From the NCBI GenBank assembly GCA_946965045.2, contig OX337239.1, positions 1,302,001 through 1,366,000 of the forward strand: DNA of 64,000 nucleotides, read 5' to 3'. A program made the position numbers and the translations under genes. The notes under the pieces are model-generated. The model searched no databases, was not told where the DNA came from, and saw only the letters and a list, made by a program, of their open reading frames with translations. The DNA is from Epithemia pelagica (Eukaryota > Protista > Bacillariophyta). The stretch's first letter is position 1. Each line of letters opens with the position of its first letter. This document shows positions 3,847 through 63,628 of the stretch, piece by piece.

Positions 3847-5083
3847 TTACCCGTTTGAATGCCAAGTATTGCGGCATGTATTGGTCTTTGCTTTCTTCCG
3901 AGCTGGCGTCGAAGAGTCACCGGATGTACCAATACCATTGACATTTTGGATAGCTTTCATTGCTACCAGCTGACGAGACCATCCCATTGGTTGCTCACAG
4001 AGTCGACGAAAGCACCATGAATTCTCGTCCATCAACCCTAATGTCCCACATGCATCATGACCATCTTCATCTCCACCAATCACAGCAATTTGATTGGTGG
4101 CAAGAGCCACTAAAGTGAATCCATCACGAGGCCCTAGGAAGGATGGAAGAATCGACACACGGTTGCGGTGCGTATTCAAAACTTCCACGTTTCCCCTCGC
4201 ATCCGCCACAACAATACAGGATCCCACAACAACCGCTGAACGGCAAGTGGAATGGAAAGTCTCAAATCAAAATGAGTCGTCCAAGTGGACGTGGGTGAAA
4301 TGACTGGTGGAGAGGCAGTCTCCTCCGTTGTCTTGGCCATCTCACCAGGCTTGGCAAAATCCCAGTACTCCACGTGTGGAGCGCCTCCAACGACGGATGC
4401 GGTGGCTCATGACTGCACCGAAACACATTAATCGAGGAAAGGCCATGGATGGTCCCTCCATGACTGTATGGTTACTGGTATCTAGAATTTCAACTGAGGA
4501 CAAACTCGACAGCGAGTCTTGTTGTTGTTGTTCTCGCTTCCATCCACCCGCAACGACAATGTAACGATCATGAACCGCAACCGCACAACATGCCATTCGT
4601 GCCGTCGCGAGTTCACAGTCCAATGCCTCACATGTATGCTGCTGCTGGTGCGTGTTGTCAAGGATGATGACCACTGCAGTAAATCACTGGCATCCATTCG
4701 TTCGATACAGTTGAAATAACGACCATTGCGTCCTCCCAGTACTTACACCGATCCATTGCACAGAACAGCGACATGTCCCCGACGCCTCTGATTCAGGGGT
4801 GGCCCTTCTCGCCACTGCAGGTTATGGAGATTCAATAAGAGTACGGAATTCGTGACGCCTTGGTCTTGTTGAAATCCCCCATAAGGACGACCGTTTGGGT
4901 CTTGTCGTCGTTGCCATGGTTGTAGTTGTTGTTGTCCGGATCGATATGATTGAGTACGACCGAAGCATGCTGGATACGACATCCTCCCAGGAGAGGAGCC
5001 CGGTTGCTTGTATTCCATTGTGGGTCTTGGTCCAAAAGGACAAGGTCCGACTGCCATGCTTGCTCTTGCGGTGTCATTGTCAT
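3847..5083 (-). pseudogene. Kelch-repeat protein pseudogene
   Basis: Kelch blades are split across frames: RIQHASVVL..VVLMG|GFQQDQGVTNSV..WREGPPLNQRRRGHVAVLCNGSV*VLGG, then ARMACCAVAVHDRYIVVAGG..VMEGPSMAFPR, then RDGFTLVALATNQIAVIGG. There is an in-frame TAA at 4743-4745 and several frameshifts. Confidence 0.75.
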
Positions 5084-31864: not shown

Positions 31865-33439
31865 TTACAGGCCCTCTGAAAATTGAATCAGCGCTTCGAC
31901 CGATGCCTTTGCATCGGTGTACCTTTCCATCATCGTCATCCCGGGAAGAATACCCCTACTTCGCAAGTGCTTGCGCCAGCGGTTGTTCATCTCGATTACG
32001 TGCGGGTCGAGTTTTCGATTCTGCGCTGTAGTGGTGGCTCCTCGTCTGAAAGATCGCCGAGCGCTAAATTCCTCCTCCACCTTGACAGTCTCGGGCAAGA
32101 TGTCAGGGCGCTGATGTTTGATCCGCTTCCAAAGCCCGTGAAATAGGTTATCCAGGTCTCCGATAAGTGCTCTCTGAATCTTCCCGTTTTTGGACACCCT
32201 CCGGAATAATGGTCCTTGTGTGATCTTGCGAACGTTCAGTTCTCTAATCGCTCTCTCAATCCATTTGCGGATTTCTATCCCAGAGCTTGACTTGTCTGCC
32301 AAGGGTTGGATGTACAATCGGAACGTTCCATCGGTCTGTTTGAATCTTCCTGCTAACGCCAACGGAACATGAGACACCGTTGAGCAGTAAAGTCCTTCCT
32401 CCCAGTATTTTCGCAACAATCCAACGTCTACTTGAGGGATTTCTTCTCCTCGGAGAGCGGCGCAGAAACCGATAACGACAAGAGCCCCCGTGAGAGCGAT
32501 CTCCAACTTCCTTTGTCCTTGGGGGAACCCCAACCATTCTTTCTCAAGGATACTCAATCCACACAGTACTTCTTCAAGCGTAACCGCCCTGTCTGGAATC
32601 CAGACGTCCCCCATGCGTCGATCGCAGCCGGCCATAAACCTTTTAAACCAAAAACTATTGGTTGGGCTGGAGGTAAACATGATGGACGATCGGTCACCAG
32701 ATCCCATGGTCGACAACCCTGTTCCTCCAGGTAGAGTATGTACAAAGTTTGAGACCACTGATTGGACTTTCCTTGCCGTCTCGAATTGAATATGTTTTGC
32801 ATTGCGACCTTCTTGTAAACTCTTCATGAGCAAGATACAAGCAATCGCCATTCCGAACGAGTCGCCAATTGCGAACGGGCCACGATGAGGCAACGGTTTG
32901 CTCAGACCAATCAAGTCCGCCGTCTTCTGTAGATTTCGCATTTCTCTCCAATTTTTCTCTACAGTCGAACGCTCTCTCGCCCAAAAGGCATCGAGGATCG
33001 CTCGTCGCACACAAGTCGCCAACAACTCGTCCTCCTTTGAACCGTCTCTCTGATATCGCCCCTTCATGTTGTAAAACATACAATCATCACATTGGAAGGG
33101 ACACATGAAATGGTCACCTTCCCTGGCCTCTCGAAAACGCTTAGTGTCATCTTCAAACTCATCGAGTCCATTTGGATCCACCAGCGCGTCATCAAGGTCT
33201 CCGGCTTCAAGAACAGGAAACCGATCCTCCTCTGCCTGTGTATAACAGGTGGAATGCCACGCTCCAGTGCATCGTTTGCTAGTGCCCCGTGTACATCCAA
33301 AATTTGCGCATACAACTCCCGTCAAAGGGAGAACTGGATGACCACACTTGCGACAAGCCGTTGTGGACCGCATCCAGTACGTGTCTTGCTCTTGAGACTT
33401 GCCATGGCCTGTGAAAAAGGTGGGAGTGAACGAACGCAA
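31865..33439 (-). CDS. Tyrosine recombinase with a Cys/His-rich N-terminus
   Basis: ALRGEE (first catalytic Arg), RSFRRGATT (HxxR-equivalent, His absent), NRW and MERYTD (catalytic Tyr). N-terminal CRKC..CANFGC..C..WHSTC..CPFQCDDC. Confidence 0.85.
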   Translation of the reverse strand: MRSFTPTFFTGHGKSQEQDTYWMRSTTACRKCGHPVLPLTGVVCANFGCTRGTSKRCTGAWHSTCYTQAEEDRFPVLEAGDLDDALVDPNGLDEFEDDTKRFREAREGDHFMCPFQCDDCMFYNMKGRYQRDGSKEDELLATCVRRAILDAFWARERSTVEKNWREMRNLQKTADLIGLSKPLPHRGPFAIGDSFGMAIACILLMKSLQEGRNAKHIQFETARKVQSVVSNFVHTLPGGTGLSTMGSGDRSSIMFTSSPTNSFWFKRFMAGCDRRMGDVWIPDRAVTLEEVLCGLSILEKEWLGFPQGQRKLEIALTGALVVIGFCAALRGEEIPQVDVGLLRKYWEEGLYCSTVSHVPLALAGRFKQTDGTFRLYIQPLADKSSSGIEIRKWIERAIRELNVRKITQGPLFRRVSKNGKIQRALIGDLDNLFHGLWKRIKHQRPDILPETVKVEEEFSARRSFRRGATTTAQNRKLDPHVIEMNNRWRKHLRSRGILPGMTMMERYTDAKASVEALIQFSEGL

Positions 33440-36400
33440 CTATGAGAGGTTCATGTTGGCCTTTCGACCACAAATAACAATCAACGGGAATTGTGAACAC
33501 GATATCCGCGATTTTCCCGAGTTTTTTGCGCCATCGATTTGACATGAGAGCAGGACAAACAAAGATATGGGAGTTATCGGGACGGATGTGATGTGAGTCA
33601 CACATCAAATCTACAGCAACGTCAGCTATCGCTGGTGGAGGATTCCAAACGTAACATCCTCGTTCGAAAGCCTCGTCATACCACATGTGCGGCTTCAACT
33701 TCGTCCACTGCAACCCGGCCGTGTATTGTAGCAGCCAATCAATGGCCCCTGGAAATCGATCTTCCGAGCTCAAATGAAGAGGAACGTGGAACAGCATTGA
33801 GTCACCTGCCATCACTCCAGTGAGCAAGTCTCCTCTAGACAGACCATCGGTGCCTTGGTCAATCATCCGAGTACCCGCTACCCACACTACTCTCAGGAAG
33901 ACGTTTCCGTTCATTTCTAACTTGCGTGCGCGAAGAACAAGTTCAAACAGCAAACGCGACGATGATGTCCCTCGATAGAACGCCGCTTCCGAAGTCGCGT
34001 TGTCGGTGAAGAGAAAAACTTCTGTCCCCACCTTCAATCTACCGCTAGTCACCAAAGATTCCAAACGGAGTATCAGATTATACAGTTCGCGAAAATTTGA
34101 AGATCTTGCACCATACTCGCGTGTCCACAAACCATGTTCTGTGTCCACGTCGTTGCTGCCATACAGCCACATCGACGATCCAAACCCTTCACCTGAGGCA
34201 TCTCCAAAAATGATGACTACTTGCGAGTGCTTGCGGGGACGAGCCAGGAGTCGAGGTGGTGAATCACCTGCTGTCAGGTGTGCCAACGCCTGAACATCGT
34301 CGTTGAATCGTCTTGCTTTCTTTACTCGCGCTGGGGCAGGTCCTTGAGAGACTGCCTTCAGAGTCTCATCTGTAAATAATGCATCACGTTCCTTTGGAGA
34401 CAACCGCCAGCCCTCCTCATTTCGGTCTGGCCGCCAAGACTCAAGCGTCAGATGAATGCCCTTGAGGTAAGGTACCATGCTCTGAAAAGTCAAGGAGACA
34501 TAAACCAGAAATCCTCGGATTTTTTCTAACTCCTTGCGATCAATTTCTTCGTCTGAAGCAGCCCACTCCTCCAGTCGTTGAATGTGGCCCTTCGTTTTGT
34601 TCCATCTTTCTTCGGAGACTGTCTTGAATACCGCATCTCCTGTTGTTTCGACTACTGCACCGGCCCATGCACCCGGGGTTTGACTTGGGGGACGCCGTTT
34701 TCGTGCTGCGTCTTGAAGGCCAAAGTACGATGCCCCCTTGGCCATTGCACTTGAAGCCAGCCACGCTTCCTCGCGTGTGGGTGCGGTTCCACGCAGGTCA
34801 TCCACATAGGTGTGAATATCCGCGGCTATTGAACCATCTTCCCTAACCTTGCATATCCACGGTTTGGAAGGATCGTACTCAACACTCCCAGGTAAGTTTA
34901 ACTCTACGCGAGCCCACCTGAAAATGTTTTTCTTGTCGAGTCTGCAACCAAAGATTACTCTTTTGACTCGTTGGGAGCATTGGGTAGTTTGATATGGCGA
35001 TACTGTTATCCCCATGGCGCATCTGACCCAAGCCTCCCACTTTCGTTTCTTCCCAGACCCGACGTCACTTTCTTCTAGAAACAATGCTGTGAGATCCACC
35101 CCCGTGTACTTCCTAATTTCTGGATGAATCCAGAAATTTAGGAACATCTCACCAAAGTCATTATCTGCGGACCAGGTTGTCACGTCGACTGATCTCAACA
35201 TCGAATCCACCGTGGCTAGACTGAACCAGGGGGCATGGAGAGAAGCGTTGAGTCCGCTTTTCGTTCCATCATACACCATCCGTATGTCGGTAGGACCCTT
35301 GGGGACTGAGAAGAAACTGGTAAGCGAGAGGATGCCAACTTGTGGGGCAATGTACCCTCTTTTTCTGACCTTGCTGATTTTCTTTTTCTCCAACTCCCGG
35401 CTTTTCTCGTCTGGATTGTTCCGCTGTGGGATTCTGTATCTCGGTGGAGGTCCTATCCACATGAGTTTTACCCCGCCCCGCATTTCGACATGCCACACTC
35501 GATCTGACATGCGCCAGAAGAACGGCGAGGAACCAGAGTCCCAATCCCACCAGGACGCCTTCGAGACATGATGCATAGCGCTCAGTCCTGCCTCAATTGA
35601 GGCCTTCTTTTCCCTATCATCCAACCCTTTTCTATGGAGTCTCCACCATGACCAAAAGTCGCTGGCAATATTCCTCTTCCAATATCTCAACGCGCCTTTC
35701 CGAATACTGTCGAGCGCTTTGATCATTTCTTGCACATCAGAAAACGCCTGAGGTTTGAACTTTGAAAGGATCCGATCATTCCATAGATGATACGGGATTT
35801 CCGCGTCATCGGATTTCGTGGCCTTCAAATTTCGGTCCTCCTCTTTAGTTTCAACGGCCAACTCAACAATCAAAGAAGGGTCCATGTCGTCTAGAGTGGA
35901 CGGTTCCTCCCACTCTGTCATTCCTGAGTTCTCCTTCTTGATTATAGTCGCTGGTCGTTTTTCATTTCTTGGAGGTTCTGCATCATTCTTCAGTGGTTGA
36001 CTCAAAAACCGTCGAATCAAATGGATCACTTGCATTCTTGATTTGAAAGGGGGGCCCACTTTATTGACCCAACGATTCAGGTCTTCTTCCGATGCTTGTT
36101 TGCTTATGATTGCTGGAAAGTCGAGAGCGAGGGAAAGTTCTCAGGCGCCCAACCGTCTCGAGACAAAACCCGTTGGCGAGAATACACTGGGCAAGACATG
36201 GAATGCATTCTTGTCTTCCTTCCACTTCAATTTTCGATTTAACATTGACGTCGCGTCGCCCTCCGTCGCTTTGACTCTGCCATGGAGCGTGTGATCAATG
36301 ATGCCGCGCACGCTCGTGAATTGCAAACCTGCCTCAATGGCCCCATCCCACCAATTCTCGAATGTTGTTTCCTCCGGTCCTTCAGTCGGTGTCCTTGAGC

Positions 36401-36899
36401 TGATATAGAACCAATCAATCCGCGTGGTCACACCGCCCAGAATGCCATGGTCCATTTGCCATCGGGTGGTGCACCAACCCATGTCCAAAGGCGGTCCTGC
36501 ATTGGGTCGACTCTTCCACCACACTACAATTTGTAAGTTCGGTGTTTTCCAAACTGGGTGTTGAGGTCCAGGTGCCATTTCGTCGAACAACACAATGCGT
36601 GTAGCCGGATAGCGAAACAAATCGTCGTTGACGTTCATGGTTGAATCGCTATTATTCACCATGTATTCGCTTCCCCTCTTTTTTCTTCCCCACGTCTTCT
36701 CCCTTGGTTTTGCCAACTTGAGTAAAACCCAATCTCGATGTATTGGATCCTCGCCCTTTGGCGGGTCTGAGATACTATCAATCCAATTTACCGATCCAAG
36801 CGAGGCCGTGGTCCAGAACCAAAATGGAATCTCTCTACATATCAGACCGAGGGAGCATCCACTTGTTCCTACTGGCAAACGCGAGTGTTTGCTTTCCAT
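33279..36899 (-). CDS. pol: RT, RNase H and Dam-like MT domain, interrupted by one TGA at 36141-36143
   Basis: RMVYDGTKSGLN, DNDFGEMFLNF, MGITVSPY, YVDD. RNase H FGDAS, NFRELYNL, FTDN, GTDGLSRG. MT motif VWNPPP..FVCP..RW. ORFs 36141-36899 and 33279-36059 share a frame (offset 840 nt) and read through RRLGA*ELSLALDFP. Confidence 0.85.
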
Positions 36900-37055
36900 A
36901 ACGCCATCGCTTTCAAGAGGCGATTCGGAGCAACGTCTCTTCGCTAGCTTAACATCGCTAACCGCTAGCGTTGATACCTTGTCCGTTTTTTCCTGATTGT
37001 TTTCGTCTTCATAAAATTTGCGTTTAGTACTGTGAGCGGGATCTCTTGCGTTTTG

Positions 37056-39056
37056 TCATTTCTTGGCCTCACCACTCGTTCCCGCCTTGCTTCCTCCTCC
37101 CGACCTCTTTTTGTTAACGGACGCAACTGCTTGATTCACCGATCGGGTTATCTTGTCAAGCTTTTCGTCGAACGAGTTGCGTAATTCGTCGAACTTCGAT
37201 CGTGGAGTGGAAAAGCGAATGAGATTTTCATGGAGAATTAACGCAATGCGAGGGTGCCCGCTGAAATCATGAGAATGATATTCTCGCATGGTTTCATGAG
37301 CCTTCAAGGTGCCCCAGAGCATGCCACCCGGCGTATTGGAAGCTCTGCCTGGGGCTCGGGCGTCCCGCAAGCTTTTAAACACAGCACGAACGCAGTGAGA
37401 TATGAGTATCCATACCTCATGCTCCGTCGCGTCACTTTCCTCTTTGATTTCTCGGTGGTAGCGAACCATCCAGTGACACAGCTCGTCCCAGAACGTTTTG
37501 CTGAGAAGCAAAAGTTCACGAGCCACACTGGATGGTTCCGACCCGAATGAGAACAAATCCCCGATAGCTTGCTCTAAGGTCTTGCGTCCGTCCTTTGCAT
37601 AGTCGAGCACTCGCTGGTGTATGCCCTCGCGACCAGAAGGGGGGTGAAAGTCGACAAATTTTGGGACTCCCGCCAAGGCGCGAGAGTTAGTTGTCATTGA
37701 CGAGTCACTGCCCTTTCCCAAGAGAGGGGGCACCTCGAGAATGAAAGATGCAATATAAGCGGTGTGGTAAGGAGTCTTGTCCTTGACTCTTGCCGTGGTT
37801 GCGCGTTGATTCGCCGCCTGACCTTCATCCGTGCTTGCGTCGGAAGTAGCAAGAGACAGTAAAGAAATGGCGTCTATAAACACGTGAGGATCGCCAACCG
37901 CCGAATGCAGAGTGAGCCAGGTGTCGCAAAACTTCCGTGAAGCGAACACAATCGAGCCGACAACGATGGCGTCCGATTCGGATTGATCTTGCAAATCCTT
38001 GACATCCGCCTTGAGCTTCTCAATTTCTTCTTTCAAGGCCGTGATAACGGATCCTCCATTTGTTGTTGACGCGGTTGCATTTGGTGGGGAGAGTGGAGTA
38101 GCCGACACTCCGGTCGTTCCCCAAGCAAACATCAATGTCGCTGTGGGTTGGCCCAAAGGAGCCACTGCCGTTCCTCTTGATTCCAACATATCGATCCGCC
38201 GCTTCAAGTCGCGTAACTCACCATCCCATTTTCCTCCAGGGTTAGACGTGGTCAAGGAAGACCGAGTGAGAAGTCGCATCGTGGGCTCTACAAATCGAAG
38301 CCGAAAATCTCCGGTAGTCATAAACCGTTCGATCTGTTCCGAGACAATCTTCTCCACGTTTGTCTTCAGGTTGGCCAGATGTCCTTCCATGGTTGAAATT
38401 CGTCCCAGTACTTCAGCTGAGGGAGTGGAACTCGCGGCCTTCTTTGAATCTTCCAACATGGAGGCCAAAGTATGAGTTGAGGAAGTCAGTTGGTCTATCA
38501 ATCCGAACGCAGACAACGTTCCAAACAAGGTGGGCCGCTCCCCTAGGAGTTCGTGAAGTACCGACAGTTTCATATGGACAGTGTCCAACTGTTCATCATG
38601 TTTCCCCCGGAAGCTTCGACGCAGCACCTTTTCCTCCTCAACAGCCGACTTGAGCGCCGATACATTGGACAGCAAGTCTCGCCACGCGCCTTGCGAAAGA
38701 GTTCGAAACGCGGGCGTGGGTTGATTCCCCAAATCCTCTGGAACATCGATGAATGCCACAGATGCTGCGGCTCTTTCCATCTTCACGGCTGCGAGAGTAT
38801 CCGCCACCATTGAATCCTCCCCTGACCTTGACGCAACATCGGGAATTAGAGTGTCATCAGAAGGTGTTGGGAGACGCACTTTCTTTCGGGCAGGGGTGTA
38901 TACGAAATTGATCCCCGTCTTGGTGTCTTCAAGGACATGAGCCACCACCTTGCTGTCCACCGTGTCACTTCCTGACGCCATGGCCGACTCCTTCAGAGCT
39001 GAAAAGGTTGCCTGCCAAGAGTGGACTCGTAGGAGGACTTTGGGGAGTTGTTGCAT
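37056..39056 (-). CDS. gag-like ORF1 of the DIRS-like element
   Basis: 666-aa ORF directly upstream of pol, with coiled-coil segments and a globular C-terminus (LWGTLKAHETMREY..HPRIALIL). Confidence 0.7.
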   Translation of the reverse strand: MQQLPKVLLRVHSWQATFSALKESAMASGSDTVDSKVVAHVLEDTKTGINFVYTPARKKVRLPTPSDDTLIPDVASRSGEDSMVADTLAAVKMERAAASVAFIDVPEDLGNQPTPAFRTLSQGAWRDLLSNVSALKSAVEEEKVLRRSFRGKHDEQLDTVHMKLSVLHELLGERPTLFGTLSAFGLIDQLTSSTHTLASMLEDSKKAASSTPSAEVLGRISTMEGHLANLKTNVEKIVSEQIERFMTTGDFRLRFVEPTMRLLTRSSLTTSNPGGKWDGELRDLKRRIDMLESRGTAVAPLGQPTATLMFAWGTTGVSATPLSPPNATASTTNGGSVITALKEEIEKLKADVKDLQDQSESDAIVVGSIVFASRKFCDTWLTLHSAVGDPHVFIDAISLLSLATSDASTDEGQAANQRATTARVKDKTPYHTAYIASFILEVPPLLGKGSDSSMTTNSRALAGVPKFVDFHPPSGREGIHQRVLDYAKDGRKTLEQAIGDLFSFGSEPSSVARELLLLSKTFWDELCHWMVRYHREIKEESDATEHEVWILISHCVRAVFKSLRDARAPGRASNTPGGMLWGTLKAHETMREYHSHDFSGHPRIALILHENLIRFSTPRSKFDELRNSFDEKLDKITRSVNQAVASVNKKRSGGGSKAGTSGEAKK

Positions 39057-60692: not shown

Positions 60693-61341
60693 GCTGTTGT
60701 TGTTGGGTGTGTGCCAGTCGCTCCGTTTGTTGTTCTCGTTGTTCTTGTTCCAGTTCGAGTTGTTGTTGTTGTTGCTGTTGCTGTTGTCGAATCAGCTTCA
60801 TGCCCTGTTGTGTGGTTTGATCTTGTTCGTGTCGCAATTGTTGCAAATAGGGCAGTACATCAGGTGTTCGTTCCCGCAAACATTGCGATGCCTTGGCTTG
60901 TGCCTTGGTATTACCGACATCGTACCAGAGAATTTGGCGAGTCGTTGTGGTGGTGGTTGTGGTTGTAGTTGTAGTTGTCGTCTTGTGGTTTGGAGGAGTG
61001 TGGTCGTCGTTCGATTCCTTGCGGGCCAAGAATCGTCCACCATGTTGGACCCGCCAAATGCGTACGACTTGTTTGGCCACCTTGGGTTTGTCCACCTTGG
61101 ATGCCGCCAAGTATTGTTTCTTGTGTTGTTGGACCAATTGGCGAAACTGAATGTTCCCCACGTGGTTGTTGCTCGCACCTCCTCGTCCCAACAAGACATC
61201 GGTTTCACGCAAGGTGGTAATACAATCCCATGGTTCTTCTTCTTCTTCATTGTCGTTGTTGTTGTCCTTGTCGTTGTCTTTTTGGTGGTGTTTGCCTTGT
61301 GGGTCGGTGCGACGAGACGTGTCATTGTTGAGATGCTTCAT
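58057..61341 (-). CDS. DUF6824-domain protein with polyQ and a long low-complexity tail
   Basis: DVLLGRGGASNNHVGNIQFRQLV..DKPKVAKQVV..GGRFL..WYDVGNTKAQAKASQCLRE. Single long ORF. Confidence 0.85.
60613..60705. repeat. (CAA)n microsatellite encoding 31 Gln
   Basis: Near-perfect GTT run on the + strand, with one GCT interruption. Confidence 0.95.
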
Positions 61342-62006
61342 TTTTTCGTTCGAGTTCTTCAATAAGACCAATCAATCAATCAATCAATTCGAAAGATTCG
61401 ACAGATACCCGATCGAGAGGCAACCAAGAAAGTTTGGGACACCCAAAGAGAGATTGATGATCAAGCTGCACTCTACTCTTACACCAATCAATCCTTCAGA
61501 TTCAGGACACTGGATTGCCCCACAGTTTGAACAGAAAAGATGCTTCCCCTCTCTCCCCTACGAGTAGAGCATGTTGTCTGCGAAAAAGGAACTGCAAACT
61601 GTTAAGCGCCACACGGGACACAGAGACAAGACCTACCGATGGAACTTGAAGCAAAGTTGGTTGGTTGCATTGTTTCTTAGAGAGAACGCGTTGCGATTTT
61701 CCCGTGGTCGTTCCTGTTCTGCAAAGGTTCACTTTTTATTTCTTATTGGAGTAGGATTTCGCCTCCCTAACTCTATACCTAGCTATGCAGGTAGTTCGTC
61801 TCACATTTTTATTTTACAGTAGAATTTTATTGTAGAGCCGGGAAGTAGTAATCGTGCGATTCGCGCGACATCATGGGTGAACCGTGTAAGGAAAATTATG
61901 TCGTTGCGACATCCCAACTCGTAATAAAACCGGGCGGTAGTCACTACCTACACATCTCTAGATATAAAGTAAGCAGATTACTCCCCTGTGTTTTCTCACT
62001 CCTTCC

Positions 62007-62128
62007 TCGTCGGGCGCCCGGCTTGTCGGGAGAATGACTCGACGGGCATATGTCTTGTCGGGCATGCGCCCTCCTCGAACATATGCCCTCATCGTCATTC
62101 TACCCTCCGCGCCGGGCGACCCTCCTCT
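62007..62128 (-). other. Modular nested hairpin (candidate structured RNA or DNA element)
   Basis: Four T(T/C)G(T/A)CGGG units at 16-nt period face four CCCTC(C/A)(T/G)C units at 17-nt period. The intervening variable 8-mers are complementary in nested order. Strand assignment is inference. Confidence 0.75.
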
Positions 62129-62563
62129 AAAGGACTGAAACACCGTGAAGTAGTCTTACTACCGGCCCGGCTTGCGCCGTCCCCCAATTCAAAATGTGGA
62201 TGGGGACGGGGGATGCATACTTGGTATTATTGTAGGGGGCGAATCATGGAACGTCTACCGACTCCTCTCTTTGTAAGTAAAAGGTACCGACATCCCTTTA
62301 CCGACACTTCCTCTCCTGTAGGTACAAGATCCATCACAATGACGTTTGTTCGCGTCGAATCTGTGATGTTTCTGACGCATTTACTACCATGATCCATGAT
62401 AGCAGAAAAGTTGCTCATTCGTCTCTTTTTTTGCTGGTCTGGTTTGTGCTGGTTGGTGAGTCATTCGAGATCTGTTGTGTCGATTGTCTCCCTCTCTCTC
62501 CAGAGACACACGCCACCACGTGCCTTGGAGATTGCACAAAAAATCTACATTGCACTGGAAACC

Positions 62564-63628
62564 ATGAAGGTCGTACAAGTTCGCTTCCCCACCATTGTCT
62601 TGGTGGTTGCCATTGCCTTTTGCTTGTCCTTGTCGGGTGAAGCATTTGCTCCTCCCTCTCCATCGTCGTCGTCCTCGTCGACCCTCAAGATTGCCAGTCT
62701 GTCTCGTCGCTACCACCATCATGAGTCACAACCACAGCCATTGGAAAATGACCTCCCGGAGCAGCCGTCCAATAAGAACAAGAATCACCTGGCCACCACA
62801 ACCGCCATTTGGACCACGGTGGCCACCACCCTCTGGACGACCGCACCCGGCATGGCCTGGGCCAATGACAGTCCCGATTGGGGATTGTTTGAAGGCCGCA
62901 CGGGTAGTTTGATTCATCCCGTCGTCATGGGAGGTCTCTTTTTGTATTCTGCCTATACCGCCTTTTTGGGCTTTCAATGGCGTCGTCAACGAACCATGGG
63001 CGATGAAATTACCCAAGTCAAGGCCGACTTGGCCGCCGTCACACCGGCTGCTGCCGCCGCAGAGGGAGAAGCACCTCCCGTCAAGACGGCCGCCCAAGTT
63101 GAATTGGAAACCTCTCTGGAAACCTTGCAACAAGAACGCAAAGATTTGGCGGCGGCCAAACCTCGGGACAAGCATTTTTCGCAAGGCTCTTTTTTGGCCT
63201 TTTTGGGGACCGCCATTGCCATTGAGGTACGTTTGTGTGTCGCTGGCTCGTGAATCGTTGTGGTCGCTTGTACTCCAGTGGTGGAAACTTGCTCATGGGG
63301 ATGTACTGACCGAATCAATCTCTCTTTTTTTCGGTTATTCTTTGCATGGGTCTCTCTTGTTGTTGTGCTTTACGTGTTATAGGGTTGTTTGAATACCTTT
63401 AGTCGAGCCGGAAAATTGTTTCCCGGACCTCATTTGTACGGTGGTGCCGCCTTGGTGGTCTTGTGGGGCTTGGCCGTGGCCACGGTACCCGCCATGCAAA
63501 AGGGCAATGATACGGCCCGTACGGTACACATTGCGGCCAATTTGGCCAGTTTGGCCTTTTTTGCCTGGCAAGTGTCCTCCGGGATTCCCATTATGCTCAA
63601 GGTCGTTGACTTGACCTCGTGGCCGTAA
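62564..63628 (+). CDS. DUF4079 family plastid membrane protein (exons 62564-63226, 63383-63628)
   Basis: Signal peptide GEA^FAP. LIHPVVMGGLF..LGFQWRRQR, RDKHF, GKLFPGPHLYGG, ARTVHI..FAWQV. GT-AG intron. Confidence 0.85.

Follow-up and report, generated by a model that had tools for sequence, protein, structure and literature searches.

A modular hairpin with G.A-zipped loops in the diatom Epithemia pelagica belongs to a small non-coding element that is very probably mobile and may depend on a tyrosine recombinase

We analysed a stretch of 64,000 nucleotides from the diatom Epithemia pelagica (contig OX337239.1, positions 1,302,001 to 1,366,000; hereafter the window), in which a modular nested hairpin is found in the region upstream of two divergent genes. 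With high confidence, the segment that bears the hairpin is a mobile element, present at this site in one assembly and absent from it in a sister assembly. Taking the whole interpretation together, we lean slightly towards the hairpin being the core of one of two fold domains (rod B) of a 389-bp non-coding, non-autonomous element with DIRS/Crypton-type recombinase mobility; the recombinase mechanism considered by itself is about evenly balanced. The parts of the element referred to below are the following, in coordinates of the window.

61767–61769 (no strand): left flanking CTA, common to the target, the empty site in locus L130 having a single CTA
61770–62158 (no strand): body of the 389-bp non-coding element, present in the window and absent at the L130 site, with homologues at loci L133, L134 and, diverged, L135
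61770–61782 (no strand): left terminus, pairing with 61958–61970
61783–61957 (no strand): interior of domain A, a branched fold, whose left part (to about 61870) is conserved in L135 and whose middle is not
61958–61982 (no strand): internal segment complementary to both termini (ICR-like splint), with continuous pairing across the joint in the joined form and a single one-base bulge
61983–62006 (no strand): outer left arm of rod B, with a compensatory change at 61991 (partner 62140) and a double change at 61999 (partner 62135)
62007–62062 (+ strand): left arm of the core, four boxes TYGWCGGG with 8-nt spacers
62063–62068 (no strand): apex CATGCG, a loop closed by a GGGC/GCCC stem
62069–62127 (+ strand): right arm of the core, four boxes CCCTCMKC with spacers of 9 nt (left-spacer complement with an added A)
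62128–62148 (no strand): outer right arm of rod B
62149–62158 (no strand): right terminus, pairing with 61975–61982; on the minus strand 62157–62158 also pair with 61974–61975
62159–62161 (no strand): right flanking CTA

The core is built on two sets of regularly spaced boxes on the + strand, the left ones starting at 62007, 62023, 62039 and 62055 (period of 16 nt) and the right ones at 62069, 62086, 62103 and 62120 (period of 17 nt), with the apex between the two arms. The three 8-nt spacers are all different, and each is complementary to its own nested partner only. Each stem features a GGG/CCC clamp and one additional A in the right arm, and the internal loops are 5x5. An earlier note, made from the letters of the window, had described this architecture of four left boxes, four right boxes and three complementary spacers, and we found it as described; the span of 62007–62128 given there starts correctly and ends one base too far, the last box stopping at 62127. 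Searches with a left and a right two-box pattern each returned three matches within the hairpin at 0 mismatches. With up to two mismatches, 4 matches were obtained in the window against 0.3–0.6 expected, a count that none of 100 shuffles equalled.

Folded as RNA, the + strand of the hairpin reached –74.7 kcal/mol with a z of –8.0 and the minus strand –92.2 kcal/mol with a z of –10.2; none of 200 shuffles was as good for either strand. With DNA parameters, the z values of the two strands were –5.6 and –6.3, both beating all shuffles. The paired structure reaches outward beyond the boxes, to about 61968–62160. A search of Rfam 15 over 61000–63000 at E up to 10 returned chance-level matches only and no family; the best match overlapping the hairpin, to SNORD109A, had 16 bits (E 8.5), the gathering score being 35. 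The earlier view of a non-coding segment outside the known RNA families is in line with this lack of any match at gathering score. No tRNA was found in the hairpin region. Two known folds were considered and rejected: a kink-turn, which has a three-base bulge followed by tandem G.A pairs, because the 5x5 loops are symmetric and have no bulge beside the G.A pairs; and a G-quadruplex, because the four GGG runs of each strand would have to be joined by loops of 13–14 nt and the spacers are complementary.

The loops follow a single rule. On the + strand, the left loops read TCGTC, TTGTC, TCGAC and TTGTC and the right loops TCCTC, TCATC, TCCGC and TCCTC, such that both sides represent one pentamer, TCSTC, in direct orientation on both arms, an identity that the earlier note had not recognised. 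Being direct and not inverted copies, the TCSTC boxes are unable to pair, and the central G of the left loop opposite the central C of the right loop forms an isolated pair. On the minus strand, GASGA faces GASGA, which gives two tandem 5'-GA-3'/5'-GA-3' mismatches flanking a G-C pair and bears out the earlier proposal that these loops fit tandem G.A pairs. The tandem 5'-GA-3'/5'-GA-3' arrangement is known to stack as sheared G.A pairs. In the folding model, a nearly gap-free rod is predicted for the minus strand only, and that strand is about 17 kcal/mol more stable because the tandem G.A loops lie on it.

Simple duplication does not yield such boxes, as had been argued before. Among the metagenome loci listed, the two best matches of a covariance model built from the four available cores (L054 and L064) are ordinary inverted arrays, and their boxes are complementary. 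Nested insertion, an excision footprint and point mutation were likewise rejected as origins of the boxes, which, in each of the four modules, depart from the complement at four of five positions. A metagenome scan with a three-box left-arm pattern gave tandem arrays of 8- and 16-mers, none with right-arm boxes among the matches listed, and scans of viral contigs with left-arm and right-arm patterns returned no family member.

The evidence for mobility comes from an empty site and from further copies. An ENA assembly contains a counterpart of the DUF4079 ORF with 99% identity (P0001), and the corresponding locus of this sister assembly (L130, ENA ERZ21939226) is 97.5–99.5% identical to the window on both sides of the insert. 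It lacks 392 bp (61770–62161): the window reads CTA, 389 bp, CTA, and L130 has one CTA. Further copies were recovered from the same assembly through protein queries, the queries being spurious ORFs that cross the element. Three were obtained (L133, L134 and L135), making four with the window copy. Over the full 389 bp, L133 and L134 are 93–96% identical to the window copy; their flanks are unrelated, and homology begins and ends exactly at CTA on both sides, so that CTA is the flanking trinucleotide in 3/3 copies (window, L133 and L134). L135 is a divergent copy, with 68% identity overall and 89% in the core. Together, the empty site in L130 and the copies at unrelated loci identify the segment as a non-coding mobile element with an insertion polymorphism here. 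Pfam assigns the flanking genes to DUF6824 (minus strand) and DUF4079 (plus strand), which confirms the divergent arrangement proposed previously; the accompanying notion of a locus-specific element tied to DUF6824 has to be abandoned for a multi-copy insertion that is absent from the same site in the sister assembly.

The family was seen only in this diatom. By DUF4079 protein, the nearest named relative is Epithemia clementina, with 66% identity; the orthologous loci of this species (L131) and of another diatom (L132) have no hairpin and are too diverged to serve as outgroups. Exact look-ups of the spurious ORFs of the insert found none on record, and a protein search with the domain A ORF gave no candidates. 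A second indel separates the two alleles close to the element: near 61600 the window lacks about 630 bp found in L130 (8976–9604), among them tandem GACATCAAA-like units.

The element starts with ACTYTATACC at its left end and its right end is GTAGTCTTA. No terminal inverted or direct repeats were detected beyond chance, the best local alignment of the left end with the reversed right end scoring 12 against a shuffled mean of 13.3. The sequence folds into two end-closed domains, namely domain A (61770–61782 with 61958–61970) and rod B (61972–61982 with 62149–62160), and because each closes at an end of the element, the two termini come to lie on adjacent bases of one internal segment. When the 392-nt unit is folded as a circle, the joined ends pair continuously with 61944–61997, apart from one bulged base at the joint (62161) and a few mismatches further out; the minimum free energy is –165 kcal/mol (z –10 against shuffles) and one long fold runs across the joint. 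At the centre of the internal segment, C62159 and T62160 of the CTA pair with G61973 and A61972, and A62161 is unpaired. This splint geometry arises automatically from two adjacent end-closed hairpins and is therefore weaker evidence than it appears. A deletion in the L134 copy (4990–5000) has removed 10 nt (AGCAGATTAC) from the internal segment, where it pairs with the right terminus; this copy would be expected not to move if the splint is important.

The divergent copy gives a view of which parts of the element are held. Identity between L135 and the window is 89% in the rod B core, 79% in the left part of domain A, 66% in the outer left arm of rod B, 33% in the middle of domain A and 23% in the outer right arm of rod B. 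L135 has kept the left boxes, and it carries CCCTCCTC exactly in three right boxes. In the outer stem, the comparison of copies brought out one cleanly compensatory substitution, T-A to A-T at 61991/62140, and one double change, C.C to T-A at 61999/62135. In L135, the left terminus still forms its stem with the internal segment by way of a T-A to C-G change, and the third spacer has gone from CATATG to CAATTG in the left arm and CTATTG in the right arm, a change that is compensatory by eye and depends on the alignment. By formal count, both partners changed in 0 core pairs across the four copies, and 7 cells were broken.

Decay is visible in the L133 copy: three stem changes are uncompensated, and 9 nt are duplicated in tandem in the third spacer. 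In its core (L133:4938–5070), one right box reads CCCGTCAA instead of CCCTCMTC, almost the reverse complement of the left box opposite, which closes the internal loop; this looks like templated arm-to-arm correction of a quasi-palindrome. Judged from these alignments, the core is the best-conserved block between diverged copies, which fits constraint. Individual copies decay neutrally, and any selection acts on the active lineage. The earlier inference of selection on structure is therefore retained in part: the core is best conserved among diverged copies, but the four copies provide no formal covariation and contain several uncompensated pair breaks. The strongest case for a required structure lies in the design itself together with the conservation of the core.

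The same loop design recurs elsewhere in this genome. The covariance model matched a second, unrelated rod of about 210 nt at L133:2800–3010, oriented like the L133 copy of the element, which lies 1.9 kb away. All its internal loops (5x5, 6x6 and 8x8) are made of TCS/GAS triplets, as (TCS)n / (GAS)n, with TCCTCGTC and its relatives on both arms, and its z values are –15.1 for the purine strand and –11.7 for the other strand. Since the TCS/GAS loops are found in an unrelated rod, the loop design is a family trait of the hairpin elements of this genome and not an accident of one sequence.

Several observations concern the surroundings of this second rod and its repeats. Its ends resemble the termini of the window element (ACTTTAATA... 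and ...AAGTAGATTTAC). Two ORFs of 204 and 186 aa lie at L133:1611–2792 (+ strand) in one frame, with a single stop between them, and end exactly at the foot of the rod; they had no match in Pfam or the PDB and may be the remnant of a mobile-element gene. In the window as a whole, the octamer TCCTCGTC is found 10 times, where about 2 would be expected, and mostly within long ORFs.

Four other explanations were weighed against recombinase-mediated mobility. A DDE transposase that makes 3-bp duplications, as those of PIF/Harbinger, CACTA, Zator and Academ do, would account for the 3-bp direct repeat at both ends (CTA twice, and once in the empty site) and for the small, non-coding size; the element would then be of the miniature inverted-repeat type and its hairpin an incidental fold-back, perhaps a source of small RNAs. 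Harbinger-type elements are indeed present in the window, but comparison of the termini showed no relation to the Harbinger found there, terminal inverted repeats are lacking, the duplicated trinucleotide is CTA in 3/3 copies, and the direct-orientation boxes and the splint would be left without an explanation, all of which makes a DDE origin rather improbable. We consider it unlikelier still that the element is an HUH-class single-strand transposon (IS200/IS605-like or Replitron-like), which would not duplicate the fixed short target beside which it inserts, and whose subterminal hairpins would serve for its recognition. Such a transposon agrees with the hairpins at both ends, the lack of inverted terminal repeats, the fixed flanking triplet and a fold that one strand only makes well, and hairpins occur generally among Rep transposons (PMC10288648). 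Against it, no Replitrons were detected among diatoms (PMC10288648), an HUH gene was not seen, no placement of the boundaries fits Helitron ends (5'-TC, CTRR-3', A/T insertion), and the empty site offers neither AT nor TT as a target.

The two remaining explanations start from RNA, and we give very little credence to either. The strong fold, the regular loops and the intergenic position would suit a locus-specific structured non-coding RNA whose four protein-binding loops act on the neighbouring DUF6824 or DUF4079 gene; L130, however, has no such segment at the orthologous site, unrelated loci beside unrelated genes do have it, and the presence/absence polymorphism contradicts a function of this kind. 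If the segment were instead the DNA copy of a circular RNA (viroid-like or retrozyme-like, about 390 nt, with a rod fold), the single long structure that the joined 392-nt molecule forms across its joint would be consistent with this, as would a size in the viroid range. This origin is every bit as remote as the preceding one: no Rfam ribozyme family was matched, a dimer has no hammerhead core on either strand, domain A is branched, and the precise CTA flanks favour site-specific DNA recombination.

Under the recombinase reading, the element would move in a DIRS/Crypton-type manner with a tyrosine recombinase provided by an autonomous relative. The CTA of a circular form would recombine with a target CTA, the internal segment would act as a splint uniting the ends of a single strand, and the G.A-zipped rod would be a folded single-strand feature needed or recognised by the machinery. 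No recombinase, reverse transcriptase or transposase domain was found adjoining any copy, and the ORFs near the second rod matched none in Pfam.

Two further regions carry possible traces of mobile-element genes. In the window, a run of long ORFs at 31865–39056 (minus strand) includes one of 926 aa with a YVDD motif (RT-like); Pfam gave no match to any of these ORFs up to E 10, and terminal repeats were not found. At L163:12825–13178 (minus strand), a short ORF with ...KIFGPDIGSLKGKTVRSKP... looks like an N-terminal fragment of a transposase, and the many short same-strand ORFs in the surrounding 5 kb suggest a mobile-element graveyard.

Overall, we interpret the element as an undescribed, structure-defined small mobile element, most likely dependent on a tyrosine recombinase and a folded single strand. 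Non-autonomous partners of tyrosine-recombinase elements are, to our knowledge, hardly described. We also put forward, tentatively and with less conviction, a new class of structure-defined miniature elements of about 390 nt, whose single-stranded form would close on an internal splint and whose periodic G.A-zipped, one-strand rod would be recognised by a tyrosine recombinase; if this holds true, they would be to recombinase elements what miniature elements are to DDE transposons. The element offers three separately mutable handles on end recognition, namely the fixed trinucleotide, the internal splint and the strand-specific G.A-zipped rod. It also indicates that constant loops combined with variable complementary stems can characterise a mobile element family and not a host RNA gene, which matters for screens of genomes for structured RNAs. 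As the polymorphic insertion lies in an upstream region common to two genes, it may constitute a natural expression variant.

One of the closest known systems is that of the DIRS elements. DIRS integration proceeds via a 3-bp junction that is identical to the target, which places this trinucleotide on both flanks of the element; the ends are restored by means of an internal complementary region, and the process involves single-stranded cDNA intermediates (PMC3266345, PMC7192593). The element described here shares with DIRS1-like elements one fixed trinucleotide flank that is present once in the empty target, and an internal region complementary to the joined termini, with single-stranded intermediates being plausible; unlike them, it measures 389 bp and has no genes. 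The left and right inverted terminal repeats of DIRS pair mutually, whereas here each half folds on itself, and no inverted similarity that would allow mutual pairing was found between the two ends. The trinucleotide is CTA instead of the usual NTT and is only partly matched in the internal segment, and a periodic G.A-zipped rod is not a described feature of DIRS.

Cryptons lack terminal inverted repeats, have short terminal direct repeats and occur in diatoms (PMC3212892). The present element resembles them in the lack of terminal inverted repeats and in the short direct repeats at both ends, which are the presumed recombination substrates, and the host group fits, CryptonS being found in oomycetes and a diatom (PMC3212892). 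The repeats of Cryptons are however of 4–6 bp (often TATGG in CryptonS), against 3 bp here; Cryptons encode their own recombinase, and neither an internal complementary region nor a long rod has been described for them.

Fold-back and miniature inverted-repeat elements are likewise small, non-coding, multi-copy and hairpin-forming, with arms made of short periodic units. Their arm units are complementary, whereas the constant units here are direct and unpaired, and the element as a whole has no terminal inverted repeats. Purine-rich centromeric satellite fold-backs exemplify tandem sheared G.A mismatch motifs, and the likeness resides in 5'-GA-3' facing 5'-GA-3' within a helix and in a stable fold made by one strand and impossible for the complementary one; here, in contrast, the motifs recur every 16–17 nt between unique Watson-Crick stems, and they do so in a mobile element, not in a satellite.
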